A stretch of 64,000 bases of DNA, taken from positions 62,001 to 126,000 of the IMG/VR virus record IMGVR_UViG_3300009545_000018. One strand, given 5' to 3'. The notes below the pieces were generated by a model that saw only the letters and a list, made by a program, of their open reading frames with translations, made no database searches and had not been told where the DNA came from. Shown here one piece after another: positions 14,113 through 50,367 of the stretch. Both the position numbers and the translations under genes were made by a program. The first letter of the stretch is position 1. Every line of letters starts with the position of its first letter.

Positions 14113-14198
14113 GCTATTGTGGTGTAATGGCAGCCACGTATCGCTTAGAACGATATGTCCGTAAGGACGTAGGGGTTCAAGTCCCTTCAGTAGCACCA
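14113..14198 (+). tRNA. tRNA-Leu(TAG)
   Basis: type II cloverleaf, stem TATCG/CGATA, loop CT-TAG-AA, ACCA. Confidence 0.92.
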
Positions 14199-20636: not shown

Positions 20637-20831
20637 ATGACATTTTTATTATTTGTACTAGCGGTAGTGGTATTGATATTAGCAATACGTTATGGTTTTG
20701 TTGGTATCCTATTAGATATATTCTTTGCCATTGTTACTGGCGGAAGCTCTTCTGGTAGTTCTGGTAAGAGTGGAGGAAGTGGATTTGGTGGAGGAGATTC
20801 TGGGGGATCTGGTGCCTCTAGTGATTTTTAA
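20637..20831 (+). CDS. short TM protein with TPM-type Gly-rich tail
   Basis: TM helix plus GFGGGDSGGSGASSDF. Confidence 0.65.
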   Translation: MTFLLFVLAVVVLILAIRYGFVGILLDIFFAIVTGGSSSGSSGKSGGSGFGGGDSGGSGASSDF

Positions 20832-20844
20832 TTGGAGATTTAAG

Positions 20845-21735
20845 ATGAAGAAAAGTATTTATACATTAATTGGTTTATTAGCATTATCAACTTTAGGTTG
20901 TTCAAGTGAAGAAATTCCAGCCGCTCATAAAGGCAGAATGTTTGAAAAGACGGGCGCGCTCGCCTTTTATAGTGGCGAGGTAGGTTTTACAGGACCTATT
21001 CTTGGTCCAGGAACGCATTATACTGGATTGTACAATGAACTTAAAATGGTAGAGTGTGCCCAAGGAACCAAAAAAGAAACGCTGCCATCCTTAACAAAGG
21101 ATGGAGTACAATTTAGCGTGGATGTCTATACAAGATTTTCTGCTAATTGTGACGATGATGCTGCATTAAAATCTATCTTAGATAAGTTTTCTCCTGGATG
21201 GACCGACGATGAAAAGCACCCAGAATGGAAACATGTAATCTTTGGTGTTCAATTATATGATCAACTAGCTCGCCCAGCTCTTGGTTCTTCTGTCAGAAAA
21301 TCAGTATCTCCTTATATTGCTAATGATATTAACAATAATCGAGAAAAGATATTTGATGAAACCACCAAATCATTCTTAGACGATATTAATAATCAAAAGC
21401 CCAAGATGATTAATATCTTAGAAATTAATCTTTCTAATTTAGATTTTCCTGATGAATTAGATAAGGCTAACGTAGCTCGGGCGGAACAAGCCGTTTTCAA
21501 AGATAAGGCTATTGCTGAACGTGAGAGAGTAACGGCTGAAATTGAAACTATGAAAATGAGAAAAGATTTAGCCACTAGTGAATCTAATAATGAAGCAGTT
21601 CGTATTGATGCCCTTGGTTCTGCCTATCGTCGCAACCCAGAATATGTTCAATTAGAATCTATTCGGGTAGCGGCTGAAAAAGGGAATTTAATTATAGCTC
21701 AACCAGGGACCGGGCTAATCATTCAACATAAGTAA
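20845..21735 (+). CDS. SPFH/prohibitin-like lipoprotein
   Basis: lipobox TLGC, LTKDGVQFSVDV, C-terminal coiled coil; start at ATG 20845. Confidence 0.75.
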   Translation: MKKSIYTLIGLLALSTLGCSSEEIPAAHKGRMFEKTGALAFYSGEVGFTGPILGPGTHYTGLYNELKMVECAQGTKKETLPSLTKDGVQFSVDVYTRFSANCDDDAALKSILDKFSPGWTDDEKHPEWKHVIFGVQLYDQLARPALGSSVRKSVSPYIANDINNNREKIFDETTKSFLDDINNQKPKMINILEINLSNLDFPDELDKANVARAEQAVFKDKAIAERERVTAEIETMKMRKDLATSESNNEAVRIDALGSAYRRNPEYVQLESIRVAAEKGNLIIAQPGTGLIIQHK

Positions 21736-21740
21736 AAAAT

Positions 21741-22049
21741 ATGAGATTTGTTTTAGAGTTTGCGGTTTTAATTGGTATTGTTACTTTAATTGTTTTCATA
21801 GTTAAAGTATCATATGCAGCATGGTCTAAAAGACGAGATATAATTGCCAAAAAAGAAGAAGCTATGTGGCAGGATCTTCGCCAGGCGTTAAGTAATAACT
21901 CTAAACAAAGATTAGAGGACTGTCTTATATTACATAATAAAAATATTCCAAAAGAAATAAAACCAATAATTCAATCTAGAATTGATGATTTAGCAATTAA
22001 AGAATCTGATGATAAGGCTTTAAAGATTATACATTTTACAGATAAATAG
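21741..22049 (+). CDS. membrane-anchored hypothetical protein
   Basis: N-terminal TM helix. Confidence 0.55.
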   Translation: MRFVLEFAVLIGIVTLIVFIVKVSYAAWSKRRDIIAKKEEAMWQDLRQALSNNSKQRLEDCLILHNKNIPKEIKPIIQSRIDDLAIKESDDKALKIIHFTDK

Positions 22050-22060
22050 GATTTAAATAA

Positions 22061-23188
22061 ATGAAAAAATATATTTCGTTATTGTTCGCCGTATTAATTA
22101 CGGCTTTTACGGCAAATGCTATGGCATTTGCCCCTCCACCTAAACCAGATAATGGTTGGTACATTGTTGATCAGGCAAATAAATTATCTGAAGATCAAAA
22201 ATCTAATCTCAATAAAAAGATTGATGGTATTAATAAAAATACTAAGAATGAATTTGCTGTTTTAATTATCACATCTATGGATGGAGATAATATTGAGGAT
22301 GTGGCTCAAAACACCTTTCGTAGTTGGGGTGTTGGTAAAGCCGGGTTAAATAACGGAGTATTACTTGCTATTTCAGTAGGTGAACGTAAGATGCGTTTAC
22401 AAACTGGCAAAGGGGTAGAGGGTGATTTACCAGATCTTAGAGCAAAAGATATCTTAGATCAAACTCTTAAACCACATTTAAAGAATGGTGATTTTTATGG
22501 AGGTATTGATGCGACTATTGATGCAACATCTTCTTTTCTAGAATCACGTGCCAACAAACAAGCTTCTCCGGCTCCAGATTCTCAAGAAAGCCCAGTATCA
22601 TCTACTACAGAAAATTCTAGTTCTGCTGGTGTTTTTCTCTTGATTTTATTTTTAGGTCTTGGAGGTGGTGGTTTATTTTTCTATTGGCTTATTCGTCGGG
22701 CAGAGCGTAAAGAAAAGGAAGCTAGTCTTCGTGATTGGCAAAAAGAGCAAGACATTTATAATAAATACGTTCAAAAACAACAAGATATTATTAATAAATA
22801 TGCTGCTGATGTTGCTAAAGCTAAAAGACAAAAATCTGCTGCGGCACCTAATATTAATCATTCCGCTGTTAATTCAGTTACTGCTGGTACAGTAGCTGTC
22901 GCTGTTGTTGGAACATCCGCCGTAGCAGCTTCTCATTTATCATCTGATGATGAGGTTAAAAAGCGCAAGAAGCGAGAAGCTGAACAAGCCCGTGAAGCTG
23001 AAGCTGCATCTAGAAAACGTCGAGATGAGGAAGAAGCAGCTGCTCGTAGACGCAGAGAAGAAAGTTCTTCATACTCTAGCTATGATTCTGGGAGTAGTAG
23101 CAGTTATGATTCTGGTAGTAGCTATGACTCTGGTGGTGGATTTGGTGGAGGAGACTCGGGTGGGTCCGGCGCCAGCAGTGATTGGTGA
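22061..23188 (+). CDS. TPM-domain (YgcG-like) membrane protein
   Basis: signal peptide, FRSWGVGKAGLNNGVLL, GKGVEGDLPD, TM, GGGFGGGDSGGSGASSDW tail. Confidence 0.88.
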   Translation: MKKYISLLFAVLITAFTANAMAFAPPPKPDNGWYIVDQANKLSEDQKSNLNKKIDGINKNTKNEFAVLIITSMDGDNIEDVAQNTFRSWGVGKAGLNNGVLLAISVGERKMRLQTGKGVEGDLPDLRAKDILDQTLKPHLKNGDFYGGIDATIDATSSFLESRANKQASPAPDSQESPVSSTTENSSSAGVFLLILFLGLGGGGLFFYWLIRRAERKEKEASLRDWQKEQDIYNKYVQKQQDIINKYAADVAKAKRQKSAAAPNINHSAVNSVTAGTVAVAVVGTSAVAASHLSSDDEVKKRKKREAEQAREAEAASRKRRDEEEAAARRRREESSSYSSYDSGSSSSYDSGSSYDSGGGFGGGDSGGSGASSDW

Positions 23189-23194
23189 AAATTT

Positions 23195-23398
23195 ATGGTA
23201 AAAGTAATTTCTAAAAAACCAGTTTCTTCTAAGAAGTGTATCTGTTCTAATTGTGGATATAAACTAGAGTATACTATAGAAGATGTTAAACGGCACGACT
23301 ATACAGATTATGCCGGTTATTCTGATACATATTACTATATAATTTGTCCACGTACAAATTGTAATAACAAGAATGAAGTAAAGCAATATATTGTTTAA
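23195..23398 (+). CDS. Zn-ribbon protein
   Basis: CSNC...CPRTNC. Confidence 0.6.
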   Translation: MVKVISKKPVSSKKCICSNCGYKLEYTIEDVKRHDYTDYAGYSDTYYYIICPRTNCNNKNEVKQYIV

Positions 23399-23410
23399 AA
23401 GATTAGGAAA

Positions 23411-23809
23411 TTGTTAATGGATAATAAAAGATTTTTAATACAATGTGCCGGTAGAAATGCATTTGATTTGGCTATGAAAGTAGCATTTATTACTGAATAT
23501 GATGACAATGATCCTAAAATGAAGGTCTCTCATTATTTTGAAGATCCAGAAAAAGGATTAGTCTTTCTTTGGTCTGAAGATAAATCGGTTAATTCTATTA
23601 AATTACCAGTTGATTTGAATTGGGAAGGTGCTGCTAATCTGGCGTGGCAGTGGTTACAAAATCAGCCAAATGAAAAATATCAAGAAGATCTTGATCATGC
23701 TGGAAGTAATAGTAAAGGATTTAGAGTTTATAATGAAGCTTGGGGACATATCAAGTCACATTATGCTGTTGTAGGAATAGTTCCTATTTGGGCTTGGCAC
23801 GGGAAGTAA
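23411..23809 (+). CDS. hypothetical protein
   Basis: ORF with AGGA SD. Confidence 0.55.
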   Translation: MLMDNKRFLIQCAGRNAFDLAMKVAFITEYDDNDPKMKVSHYFEDPEKGLVFLWSEDKSVNSIKLPVDLNWEGAANLAWQWLQNQPNEKYQEDLDHAGSNSKGFRVYNEAWGHIKSHYAVVGIVPIWAWHGK

Positions 23810-23811
23810 TA

Positions 23812-24084
23812 ATGGAAAACCCAGCAACGTGGAATCAATGTATTAGAATATTAAATAATAGTCTCAATTATGGAAATGATTCTATGTTAACGACAGATAA
23901 AGTTTTATCAATTTTAATTAATAATAATTTTCTTATACCTGAAGATAAAAATAATCAAAAAATTATTGATGCTATTGACAAGTCTATAGCAAGTCATCAA
24001 TATGCTATTGATAATCAATGTTGCGGGAATAGTATTGGAAACATAATTTATTTTAATTTGAAACCTTTAGGTGTTGTAGAATAA
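23812..24084 (+). CDS. hypothetical protein
   Basis: ATG 23812 just after upstream stop. Confidence 0.5.
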   Translation: MENPATWNQCIRILNNSLNYGNDSMLTTDKVLSILINNNFLIPEDKNNQKIIDAIDKSIASHQYAIDNQCCGNSIGNIIYFNLKPLGVVE

Positions 24085-24089
24085 CTAAT

Positions 24090-24206
24090 GTCGAGATGGC
24101 GAAAAGGTAAACGCGGAAGAATTATGGGTATAATACATAATTCATCTGGGAAACTGTAATTATACTACATAACCCTTGCAGGTTCAAGTCCTTGCTCTCG
24201 ACACCA
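24090..24206 (+). tRNA. atypical type-II tRNA-like RNA with extended anticodon arm
   Basis: GTCGAGA/TCTCGAC+ACCA, Leu-like D arm, TTCAAGT T-loop; 21-nt loop containing ATTATG/CATAAT. Confidence 0.7.
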
Positions 24207-24208
24207 TA

Positions 24209-24478
24209 ATGAATAAATATGATAATGAATATTGGTCAATAATTGAAGAGGCTCAACTTTATTTAAATATAGATGTTCTTAATTATGCTAAAAATAATAA
24301 ACATGGAGTTTTTTATCTTTATGAAAGTCCATGGACCGGAGAGCTAATAGCAAAATATGAAGATGATATATTTGAATTCCGATATTATAATGAATGGAAA
24401 TATCTCATTAAATATAATAATGAGTTAATTTTTGAACAAGAATTAATTAAAAGAATAAAACTTATTGCCTTTATTTAA
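24209..24478 (+). CDS. small protein with KAF-like tag
   Basis: ends KLIAFI. Confidence 0.65.
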   Translation: MNKYDNEYWSIIEEAQLYLNIDVLNYAKNNKHGVFYLYESPWTGELIAKYEDDIFEFRYYNEWKYLIKYNNELIFEQELIKRIKLIAFI

Positions 24479-24492
24479 AGTTTGTTGTTGAA

Positions 24493-24888
24493 ATGAAAGA
24501 TATTTGTAATATGCAAATTAAAATGTTTAAATCTAAAATTCATCGTGCTACCTTAACTGGAGCAAATCTCGAATATGAAGGATCAATTAAAATTGATTCT
24601 GATCTTTTAGATGCTGCTAATATACTTGAATATGAATCAGTTTATGTATGGAATATTAATAATGGTAATAGGTTAATGACATACACTTTACGAGGTGAAG
24701 CTGGTTCAGGCATTGTAGAATTAAATGGCAGTGCTGCCAGATTAGGTCATAAAGGTGATTTAATAATCATTACTACCTTTGCTGACATGACCCCCTTAGA
24801 AGCTAAAGAATTTAAACCTACTGTTGTTTTAGTAGATTCTTTTAATAAAGTTAAATCTATATCAGATAGATCAGGCGGATTAACATGA
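24493..24888 (+). CDS. panD: aspartate 1-decarboxylase
   Basis: KSKIHRATLTGANLEYEGSIKID (G-S self-cleavage site), LNGSAAR; start may be 24511. Confidence 0.93.
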   Translation: MKDICNMQIKMFKSKIHRATLTGANLEYEGSIKIDSDLLDAANILEYESVYVWNINNGNRLMTYTLRGEAGSGIVELNGSAARLGHKGDLIIITTFADMTPLEAKEFKPTVVLVDSFNKVKSISDRSGGLT

Positions 24889-25087: not shown

Positions 25088-25699
25088 ATGCAAACATTAA
25101 AACTTATTCAACTTAATAATTGTCTAATTAATTATAAATTAGGAAAAGAAATTGGTTGTGGGGCTGATGGACAACTATTTGAACTTGCAGACTTTAAAGA
25201 TAAAGTAATTAAGATATCAGTAATATTTGATTTAGATTTTATTGGTAAAGATGTATTAAATAATAAATATGATGCATTTTCTAAAAACCTAAGTTATTTA
25301 CAACAACACAATACTATTTTTGCAAAAGTCTTTGATTTTCAAAAGATTGGAATCTTTAAAAGATTATTCAATAACATAGATCAATATTATTTATTACATT
25401 ATTGTGTAATGGAAAAATGCTTTAAGCTTACTGAAGATGAGAAAAAAGTATTTCATACAATTATTTCTCATGAAGATCGTGGAATAACAAAAAAATTTTC
25501 AACAGAAAAAATTGAAGAAATATTATTTGGATTATCGCGGGGGCTTGACTTTGATTCTAAAAAGATTAAATTGTTTTATGAATCAGTGATGACATCACCC
25601 ATTAAACATTTAGATTTGCATCCCAGAAATATTATGAAAGATATTAATGGGAATTTTAGATTAATAGATTTTGACCGAATTCAATTGGAGATTACATGA
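25088..25699 (+). CDS. protein kinase-like fold protein
   Basis: IGCGADG loop, HLDLHPRNIM, LIDFD. Confidence 0.75.
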   Translation: MQTLKLIQLNNCLINYKLGKEIGCGADGQLFELADFKDKVIKISVIFDLDFIGKDVLNNKYDAFSKNLSYLQQHNTIFAKVFDFQKIGIFKRLFNNIDQYYLLHYCVMEKCFKLTEDEKKVFHTIISHEDRGITKKFSTEKIEEILFGLSRGLDFDSKKIKLFYESVMTSPIKHLDLHPRNIMKDINGNFRLIDFDRIQLEIT

Positions 25700-46212: not shown

Positions 46213-46302
46213 GGGGAAGTAGCTCAGCCGGCCAGAGCGCTTTACTGTTTTATAAAACGAATAGTGAAGAGGTCGATGGTTCAAATCCATCCTTCCCCAC
46301 CA
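46213..46302 (+). tRNA. tRNA with 20-nt anticodon loop, identity uncertain
   Basis: GGGGAAG/CTTCCCC+ACCA, canonical D and T arms; anticodon arm extended to about 11 bp. Confidence 0.75.
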
Positions 46303-48484: not shown

Positions 48485-48552
48485 CTGGATGGTGGTTACC
48501 AAATCCGCAAAGGGGTATAGAAATATACTCGGAGGATTGAATCCACTATTAT

Positions 48553-48687
48553 GCAATTCTGGTATAATGGCATTACTGACTCTAAAAAGAGTATCACTTA
48601 CAAAGAAACCTGTGAGGCTACCAGGAAATTATTGTAAGAATAACGCCTTGCCTGGCGTAGATGTTGGTTCGATTCCAACGGATTGCA
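48553..48687 (+). ncRNA. tRNA-like RNA with multi-hairpin central insertion
   Basis: GCAATTC/GGATTGC, D arm, GTTGG-TTCGATT-CCAAC; about 80 nt of hairpins replace anticodon/variable arm. Confidence 0.6.
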
Positions 48688-48691
48688 TTAA

Positions 48692-50230: not shown

Positions 50231-50367
50231 TCCGAGGTACGTCTAATGGTAAGACACGCGGCTGTGGGAACTATAGGTTAATAATAAGTCCCGTTCGATT
50301 CGGGCAGTTCCAAGAATAACCGCGCGGTGGTAACACTTTGTAGGTTCGAGTCCTACCCTCGGAGCCA
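50231..50367 (+). tRNA. tRNA-Asn(GTT)-like gene with 51-nt insertion in the anticodon
   Basis: TCCGAGG/CCTCGGA+GCCA; CGCGG-CTGT[50266-50316]TAA-CCGCG. Confidence 0.75.

Follow-up and report, generated by a model that had tools for sequence, protein, structure and literature searches.

Location and neighbourhood of the element

The window, i.e. the whole stretch of 64,000 nucleotides analysed here, represents bases 62001–126000 of a phage record of 447,763 bp (31% G+C). Direct reading of its sequence revealed a 117-nt tRNA-like RNA gene at positions 24090–24206 on the plus strand, located between two ORFs without assigned function. The upstream ORF (23740–24084, plus strand) has its stop codon 5 nt before the RNA, while the ATG of the downstream ORF (24209–24478, plus strand; 89 aa) is positioned 2 nt past the CCA end, and the 124-nt gap in the gene calls coincides exactly with the element. 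Promoter-like and terminator-like sites were scanned for around the element and were found at chance level.

The genes surrounding the element (20725–24888) are auxiliary in appearance, and include those encoding an SPFH/Band 7 protein (20725–21735), a TPM-domain protein (22061–23188) and a homologue of the aspartate 1-decarboxylase PanD (24493–24888). Further downstream, positions 25088–25699 encode a conserved kinase-like protein of 203 aa, which carries a G-loop, a catalytic Lys and an HPRN...DFD signature, and whose protein-kinase fold is truncated just after the DFD motif. The AlphaFold model of this protein reached a pLDDT of 92.5, with PknB and CDK-type kinases as its best matches in the PDB.

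In total, 37 tRNA genes were called by ARAGORN in the record, of which five are canonical tRNA-Leu genes and two are of the tRNA(CUA) type. The tRNA genes nearest to the element are located at window positions 14113 and 46213, in agreement with an earlier note on this DNA, made from the letters alone, in which the element was described as lying apart from the main cluster. The element is present as a single copy in the genome, the next-best matches to the family covariance model described below being four canonical tRNA-Leu genes. The phage was furthermore shown to encode two nucleotidyltransferases of the PolyA_pol/CCA-adding superfamily (PF01743). A class I LeuRS-type gene was searched for and is absent from the phage genome, so that any charging of the element would fall to the host enzyme; a search for candidate partners showed L/F-transferase and FemAB to be absent from this genome as well, and no gene was found to track with the element beyond synteny.

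Structure of the tRNA-like element

The 5′ strand of the acceptor stem, GUCGAGA (24090–24096, plus strand), pairs perfectly over 7 bp with UCUCGAC (24196–24202), which is followed by A73 (24203) and an encoded CCA (24204–24206, plus strand), exactly as the earlier note had described for the acceptor stem and its ACCA end. U8, G9 and a Leu-type D arm occupy positions 24097–24114 (plus strand). The D stem consists of 3 bp, GCG (24099–24101) with CGC (24112–24114), which is normal for class II (Leu-type) tRNAs, and closes the loop AAAAGGTAAA, with G18 and G19 contained in the loop AAAAGGUAAA. On the 3′ side, UU (nt 47–48) and the T arm extend across 24176–24195 (plus strand), comprising GCAGG (24178–24182), the loop UUCAAGU (24183–24189) and CC(U)UGC (24190–24195). 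The extra U in the 3′ strand of this arm can be read as part of an 8-nt loop or, when judged against the orthologues, as a bulge (CC-U-UGC), and the same comparison showed it to be private to the window copy. Both the D and T arms had been taken as normal; this holds for the D arm, while the T arm deviates by this nucleotide.

Direct reading and folding placed an extended ‘anticodon’ arm, referred to here as arm 1, at 24115–24147 (plus strand). A helix of GAATTATG (24119–24126) and CATAATTC (24136–24143) was shown to enclose GGTATAATA (24127–24135), as written in the earlier note, and to continue outward through A24117–U24145, G24116–C24146 and G24115·U24147 (corresponding to G26·U44). The lower stem of 5 bp (24116–24120 with 24142–24146) contains an A × A mismatch (24118 × 24144), and the upper helix extends to G24126–C24136, leaving an apical loop of 9 nt (24127–24135, GGUAUAAUA). 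Arm 1 of the window copy accordingly comprises 12 pairs, including G26·U44, and this single mismatch. The 5-bp anticodon stem encloses 21 nt rather than the 7 of a canonical tRNA, which confirms the 21-nt loop reported previously.

The variable region, estimated before at about 30 nt, measures 30–31 nt (31 nt when counted as 24147–24177) and contains a long arm (arm 2; 24148–24175, plus strand). In the fold, this arm is represented by GGG (24148–24150) paired with CCC (24173–24175), an internal loop, UGUA (24155–24158) paired with UACA (24166–24169) and a 7-nt loop. Within the apical loop of arm 1, the segment GUAUAAU (24128–24134, plus strand) is the perfect reverse complement of the segment AUUAUAC in the variable-arm loop (24159–24165, plus strand). 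The minimum free energy fold of the window element, as predicted by RNAfold, is a cloverleaf with a z-score of −3.1.

Comparison with RNA families showed that the window copy attains 28.4 bits against the Rfam tRNA family (RF00005; cut-off 29), with the anticodon arm being skipped, while some of the orthologues described below pass this model with 35–39 bits. No family in Rfam 15 was found to match the element, nor did any intron family. ARAGORN did not call the window element at default settings; when introns were allowed and the threshold was lowered, a tRNA-Ile(UAU) with a 37-nt intron was proposed, a candidate which was dropped as it cuts through both conserved arms. A tmRNA was likewise not reported by ARAGORN -m, the element being 117 nt in length with a full D arm and lacking a tag reading frame. 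Furthermore, the acceptor branch is of the 7/5 type in all 21 sequences of the family, by which an allo-tRNA was rejected, such RNAs being defined by a 12-bp acceptor branch with an 8/4 or 9/3 split (PMC5389517).

Conservation and covariation of the cloverleaf

To identify relatives of the element, the TPM-domain gene upstream and the small kinase-like gene downstream were used as anchors of the locus, within which the element was found by script and then by a covariance model (R1). A total of 21 distinct orthologues were identified at the syntenic position in genomes and genome fragments of related phages of ~270–500 kb, derived from IMG/VR and from JGI metagenomes. In these 21 sequences the kinase-like gene follows the element at a distance of a few nucleotides to 1.3 kb, the interval being occupied by a varying set of small genes, and most copies are packed between ORFs as tightly as the window copy. 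The flanking genes vary among the orthologues, and the neighbouring proteins of the phages concerned are only ~40–60% identical. Members of the family score 71–123 bits against the family covariance model, compared with 45–57 bits for canonical tRNA-Leu genes. The window copy represents the lowest-scoring member (71.5 bits) and has a T-stem bulge, an A × A mismatch and an interrupted variable arm.

All orthologous loci have the kinase-like gene on the downstream side of the RNA, and relatives that lack the RNA also possess this gene. Three such near-complete relatives (G005, G006 and G007) carry the kinase-like gene without the element, indicating that the element is dispensable for the lineage. 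One orthologue (L082:1-121) is encoded on a metagenome contig of 1151 nt that starts 2 nt upstream of the 5′ end of the element, which may be due to chance in the assembly or to a library made from RNA. Neither half of the element gave a match in IMG/VR when searched for with exact 25-nt patterns, and a BLAST search of the 2.5-kb region against GenBank phages was equally negative. A generic pattern (Leu-type D arm, 60–90 nt, T arm) retrieved 61 matches in IMG/VR. Those beyond the known orthologues were excluded from the family, as they represent other long tRNA-like genes that score at most 57 bits, like ordinary tRNA-Leu, and they lack clear loop–loop complementarity, with the possible exception of L031. 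A provirus contig (L005) that matched the first pattern was also left out, its middle part being folded differently.

Nested pairing was counted in a model-based alignment of the 21 sequences. Standard pairs occupied 94.3% of 629 cells, compared with ~43% in slid-partner controls, and double changes affecting both sides were observed in 24 of 30 pairs. The 157 double-change cells contrast with 40 ± 6 in shuffled alignments, and none of 500 shuffles reached the observed values for pairing or double changes. All seven pairs of the acceptor stem were intact in every orthologue, with double changes in six of them; the D stem was paired in 96.8% and the T stem in 100% of cells, the latter with double changes in four of its five pairs. 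Similarly, the lower helix of arm 1 (helix 3) was 95.2% paired with double changes in four of five pairs, whereas arm 2, which in the family is a 10-bp helix, was 86% paired with double changes in nine of ten. Conservation in relatives, on which the earlier note had made its reading depend, was thus found, since the 21 orthologues retain all helices with compensatory changes, and the nested cloverleaf is under selection.

In an alignment of 14 sequences (A3), invariant positions included U8, G9, G10, A14, G18, G19, the U preceding the T stem and G53, as well as T54, T55, C56, A58, C61, C72, A73 and C74 in the 3′ part. CCA is encoded in the window copy and in most orthologues, the others ending in ACAA, ACUA or ACCU. 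The two arms are of regular length across the family, the strands beside the paired loop segment measuring 14.6 ± 1.1 and 14.0 ± 1.1 nt in arm 1, and 10.5 ± 1.0 and 11.3 ± 0.8 nt in arm 2; by this measurement the variable region spans 26–30 nt. In most orthologues a mismatch, bulge or small internal loop is located directly above the 5-bp lower stem, while arm 1 of L002 folds into 15 uninterrupted pairs.

These observations bear on whether the element is a decaying tRNA-Leu pseudogene with hairpins arisen by chance. Such an origin would be in line with the several imperfections of the window copy, its omission by ARAGORN at default settings and its score below the Rfam gathering threshold. The persistence of the element in 21 orthologues whose neighbouring proteins are ~40–60% identical, together with compensatory changes that affect each helix as well as the loop–loop pairing described below, refutes it, and we regard decay as having next to no probability.

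Pairing between the loops of the two long arms

The principal feature of the family, which goes beyond the earlier note, is the complementarity and covariation between the tip of arm 1 and the loop of the variable arm. In all 21 orthologues, the apical loop of arm 1 (5′-GUNNNN) is complementary over 6–7 nt to the loop of arm 2 (NNNNAC-3′). As MAFFT lost the register of the two segments, these pairs were counted by script, anchored on the invariant G–C and U–A pairs, and allowing a 1-nt bulge, which occurred in four sequences. Under these conditions, 125 of 126 cells were Watson–Crick pairs. Compensatory changes were observed at four of the six pairs, i.e. positions 3–6, each with two to four pair types: AU (7) and GC (14) at position 3; UA (14), AU (1) and CG (6) at position 4; AU (18), UA (1) and GC (1) at position 5; and AU (6), UA (11), GC (1) and CG (3) at position 6.

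The corresponding segments of arm 1 and arm 2 illustrate this variation: GUAUAAU and AUUAUAC in the window copy, GUGUAAU and AUUACAC in L003, GUGAUG and CAUCAC in L004, GUAUGAU and AUCAUAC in L075, GUACAU and AUGUAC in L082, GUGUAC and GUACAC in L070, and GUGCAU and AUGCA-A-C, with one bulged A, in L072. The weakest case is represented by L071, with GUAC and GUAC. On average, the longest complement between cognate loops was 7.0 nt, compared with 4.3 nt for non-cognate and 3.4 nt for shuffled loops, and none of 5000 permutations of the partners reached the observed complementarity.

The covariation proves that the loop–loop pairing is real and is silent on whether it occurs within one molecule or between molecules. 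Arm lengths were found to be uncorrelated and do not separate the two arrangements. Judged by simple helix geometry, an intramolecular kiss between arms of ~14 bp and ~10 bp that emanate from one junction looks strained.

The loops may alternatively pair between molecules, hand in hand, generating a symmetric homodimer or a closed ring, an arrangement that would be compatible with a role as tRNA mimic and that we put forward tentatively, as a minority view. In a dimer, arm 1 of one molecule, the kissing helix and arm 2 of the other would stack coaxially, giving two composite helices of ~30 bp, both ends of which would carry a tRNA top half. Besides the covariation, which proves pairing and not molecularity, this arrangement is favoured by loops that resemble known dimerization loops, with six paired nucleotides and a flanking unpaired A (A-GUGUAC-A and A-GUACAC), and by fixed arm lengths (~14 and ~10 bp) with a shared origin at the junction of nt 43/44/45. 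By helix geometry, an intramolecular kiss would require sharp bends, which the uninterrupted 15-bp arm of L002 does not obviously allow, and oligomers formed through kissing loops have been documented among natural phage-associated RNAs (PMC12286853, PMC7357161). Conversely, the defect above the 5-bp lower stem in most orthologues could act as a hinge for an intramolecular kiss, and peripheral hairpins of large RNAs commonly engage in loop–loop contacts within the molecule.

The more specific proposal of a self-assembling tRNA mimic, in which intermolecular loop pairing would produce a homodimer or ring bearing several chargeable tRNA-Leu acceptor/elbow modules and no exposed loops, appears rather unlikely to us, at about a one-in-four level of belief. 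If true, the assembly would be a phage RNA particle of a new kind, serving to capture or scaffold a host factor that binds tRNA, with LeuRS, EF-Tu, RNase P or a defence enzyme targeting acceptor ends as candidates.

Absence of a conserved anticodon

In its acceptor stem, its D and T arms and the nucleotides of the elbow, the element was shown to conform to a canonical tRNA, while in none of the 21 orthologues does the 5-bp stem carry a 7-nt loop in which U33 and an anticodon are present. Instead, the 5-bp lower stem encloses 21–29 nt. Possible anticodons were sought by fixing nt 26 and nt 44 and by retaining x nt on the 5′ side and 7 − x nt on the 3′ side (x = 0 to 7). Under any register, U33 was present in at most nine of the 21 orthologues, and U33 together with a Leu anticodon in at most three, which shows that the family has no conserved anticodon.

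The earlier note had offered a short intron as one of two explanations, according to which the tip of the long arm would be excised and the halves ligated to yield a decoding tRNA-Leu. This explanation did not hold up, and we consider it very improbable. A UAA anticodon can be obtained in the window copy and in L002 when the loop is built from four 5′ and three 3′ nucleotides, short insertions in phage tRNA genes are on record (PMC6784885), and the genome carries other tRNA-like genes with inserts (window 46213–46302 and 50231–50367), as well as a weak match to the T4 Rnl1 model, below the family cut-off. Against excision stand the inconsistent anticodon register across the 21 orthologues, the absence of RtcB from the phage genome upon searching and the five canonical tRNA-Leu genes already encoded there. 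Moreover, covariation with the variable-arm loop would be needless for an excised spacer, yet it is observed for the very loop that splicing would remove.

Known intron types were also considered and rejected. For a group I intron in tRNA-Leu(UAA), the extra sequence amounts to just 14–22 nt, compared with ~200 nt or more including a P1–P9 core. For an intron of the archaeal/eukaryal type, arm 1 is continuous or interrupted by one mismatch or bulge, without a bulge–helix–bulge motif, and no register restores a Leu anticodon.

Other unusual tRNA-like genes

Additional tRNA-like genes of unusual structure were observed in the same genome. A 90-nt gene at window positions 46213–46302, for which ARAGORN reported a four-base anticodon (‘gttt’), possesses an anticodon arm that forms a fully paired helix of 11 bp with an 8-nt loop, GUU being located in the 5′ strand. 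Across the genome, neither tRNA-Asn nor tRNA-Ser genes were called. An orthologue of the 90-nt gene on a related fragment (L130:1500-1590, minus strand) has a very different anticodon region with an 11-nt loop. Two further tRNA-like genes of 137 nt each are located at 50231–50367 and 48552–48688. In the former (39 bits against the Rfam tRNA model), the anticodon arm is enlarged by ~58 nt that include a T-arm-like hairpin, the variable arm is long and the discriminator is G73, while in the latter a very long stretch separates the anticodon arm from the T arm. Outside the window, a 125-nt tRNA-like gene with an insertion of ~50 nt in the D loop (L128, G000:C1:212753-213035) was found directly upstream of two tRNA(CUA) amber-suppressor genes, an arrangement that hints at TAG reassignment in part of the genes of this phage.

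A related phage fragment carries a 100-nt tRNA-like gene with an insert (L127, G003:C1:4698-4797, minus strand), in which ~25 extra nt follow an anticodon-loop sequence of the UUAUAAA type. Leu-type tRNA-like genes of 110–200 nt, with at least 60–90 nt between D arm and T arm and sometimes several per contig, were also encountered in many unrelated phage contigs of IMG/VR (L009, L017/L061, L019, L020-L022, L025, L028-L031, L037/L040/L057, L039/L053, L051, L054, L060 and L062). They score 57 bits or less against the family model and were not counted as members; one of these (L031:82-202) may have complementary loops of its own (UGGCAGC and GCUGCCA).

Proposed nature and role of the element

The other explanation offered in the earlier note, a non-decoding mimic, is the one favoured here, given that the features of the top half are conserved and covary in the 21 orthologues, that the closest relatives within the genome are canonical tRNA-Leu genes and that no anticodon is conserved. 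On balance, the element is probably a non-decoding RNA that descends from a class II tRNA-Leu, is conserved in a clade of phages of ~270–500 kb and would serve there as a mimic, decoy or adaptor. This clade was sourced from environmental metagenomes, and its members are described as very large soil phages. The Leu origin is based on the invariant A73 and C74 and on a D arm that matches UGGCGGAAUGGNNUACGCG; A73, the class II core and the Leu-type D arm, all features of tRNA-Leu identity, are present, while leucylation itself is a prediction.

In bacteria, the identity element recognized by LeuRS is A73 and not the anticodon, the enzyme making use of A73 and the class II core, while RNase P, RNase Z and the CCA-adding enzyme rely on the elbow together with the acceptor/T minihelix. 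Since the parts used by such anticodon-blind enzymes are conserved, we read the element as a tRNA-Leu-derived mimic that would be matured and probably charged, and that does not decode. In its proposed evolution, the parts recognized by anticodon-independent tRNA machinery (7-bp acceptor stem, G1–C72, A73, U8/A14/G18G19, T-loop elbow and Leu-type D arm) would have been retained, while a helix extension took the place of the 7-nt anticodon loop to give an arm of ~14 bp, and the variable arm grew to ~10 bp.

RNase P together with 3′ processing would probably release the RNA from a polycistronic transcript, and the RNA would probably receive or keep its CCA, for which the PF01743 nucleotidyltransferases of the phage are available. 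The host LeuRS, which ignores the anticodon, would then probably accept the RNA as a substrate and charge it, or bind it tightly. As the D and T loops would be held in the elbow and the loops of arms 1 and 2 would pair with each other, no single-stranded loop would remain free and no decoding would be expected, the two arms either locking each other or linking molecules hand in hand. Any action would presumably rest on the tRNA-like top half, with which the RNA could serve some tRNA-binding factor as mimic, decoy or adaptor.

Another possibility is that the element acts only in cis, as a processing or stability signal at which RNase P and RNase Z would separate the flanking mRNAs, the released RNA being without function. 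The tight packing described above, with gaps of 5 nt to the preceding stop codon and 2 nt to the following ATG and with most orthologues equally tight, and the apparent lack of an own promoter or terminator are consistent with such punctuation. However, punctuation requires just the acceptor/T minihelix and the elbow, and does not account for an invariant A73, a Leu-specific D arm, arms of fixed length or covarying loops, while the flanking genes that would be separated vary among the orthologues. A purely cis-acting signal is considered improbable.

Huge phages encode dozens of tRNA genes, some of which contain unexplained insertions that are usually dismissed as introns or pseudogenes. The present case shows that at least one such gene with an insert represents a separately evolving and structurally constrained RNA family, which has lost decoding and gained a covarying loop–loop pairing, while the regions on which RNase P, the CCA-adding enzyme and LeuRS rely were kept. 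Phage annotations of a ‘tRNA with intron’ can, by implication, be wrong in kind. At ~117 nt, the element is an easily synthesized object with which to test tRNA mimicry by phages outside translation, as well as self-assembly of natural RNAs derived from tRNAs.

Comparison with known systems

A search of the literature on extended-anticodon, kissing and tRNA-like phage RNAs yielded no description of the element. Its closest counterpart is bacterial class II tRNA-Leu, with which it shares the 7/5 acceptor/T architecture, G1–C72, A73, a 3-bp D stem, a D arm of the UGGCGGAAUGG..ACGCG type, the T-loop GTTCRA and a long variable arm. It differs from tRNA-Leu by lacking a 7-nt anticodon loop, a conserved U33 and an anticodon, by an anticodon arm of ~14 bp instead of 5 bp and by the mutual pairing of two loops, and its variable region is longer than in the canonical tRNA-Leu genes (83–87 nt) of the same genome.

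With phi29-family pRNA, a phage RNA of ~117–120 nt in which complementary, covarying loops pair between molecules to form a ring, the likeness is one of principle only, i.e. a similar length and two covarying complementary loops roughly 35–40 nt apart. The pRNA belongs to small protein-primed podoviruses and is not tRNA-like; it bears no relation to the element in sequence or fold, being a three-way junction rather than a cloverleaf, and nothing links the element to packaging.

Mimicry of the acceptor/T/elbow portion, of which tRNA enzymes make use without ordinary decoding (PMC4201824, PMC5389517), is a property that the element has in common with the tRNA-like domain of tmRNA, the YrlA/Y RNA module, Bacillus cereus tRNA-Other and plant-virus tRNA-like structures (TLS). 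The ends of the element form an acceptor stem, in contrast to the Ro-binding stem of YrlA; its acceptor stem is not pseudoknotted, unlike that of plant-virus TLS; and, in contrast to tmRNA, it contains no tag reading frame. Kissing anticodon and variable arms are seen in none of these four types of RNA.

The nearest published observation concerns the tRNAs with ‘enigmatic introns’ of Lak megaphages (PMC6784885). As compared by description only, both cases involve a huge phage with many tRNA genes, an insertion in the anticodon region, genes that are missed by bacterial settings of tRNA-finding programs, and a function that is unexplained. The Lak tRNAs were described as having assignable anticodons once the insert is removed, whereas the element has none, and its insert takes part in a covarying tertiary pairing.
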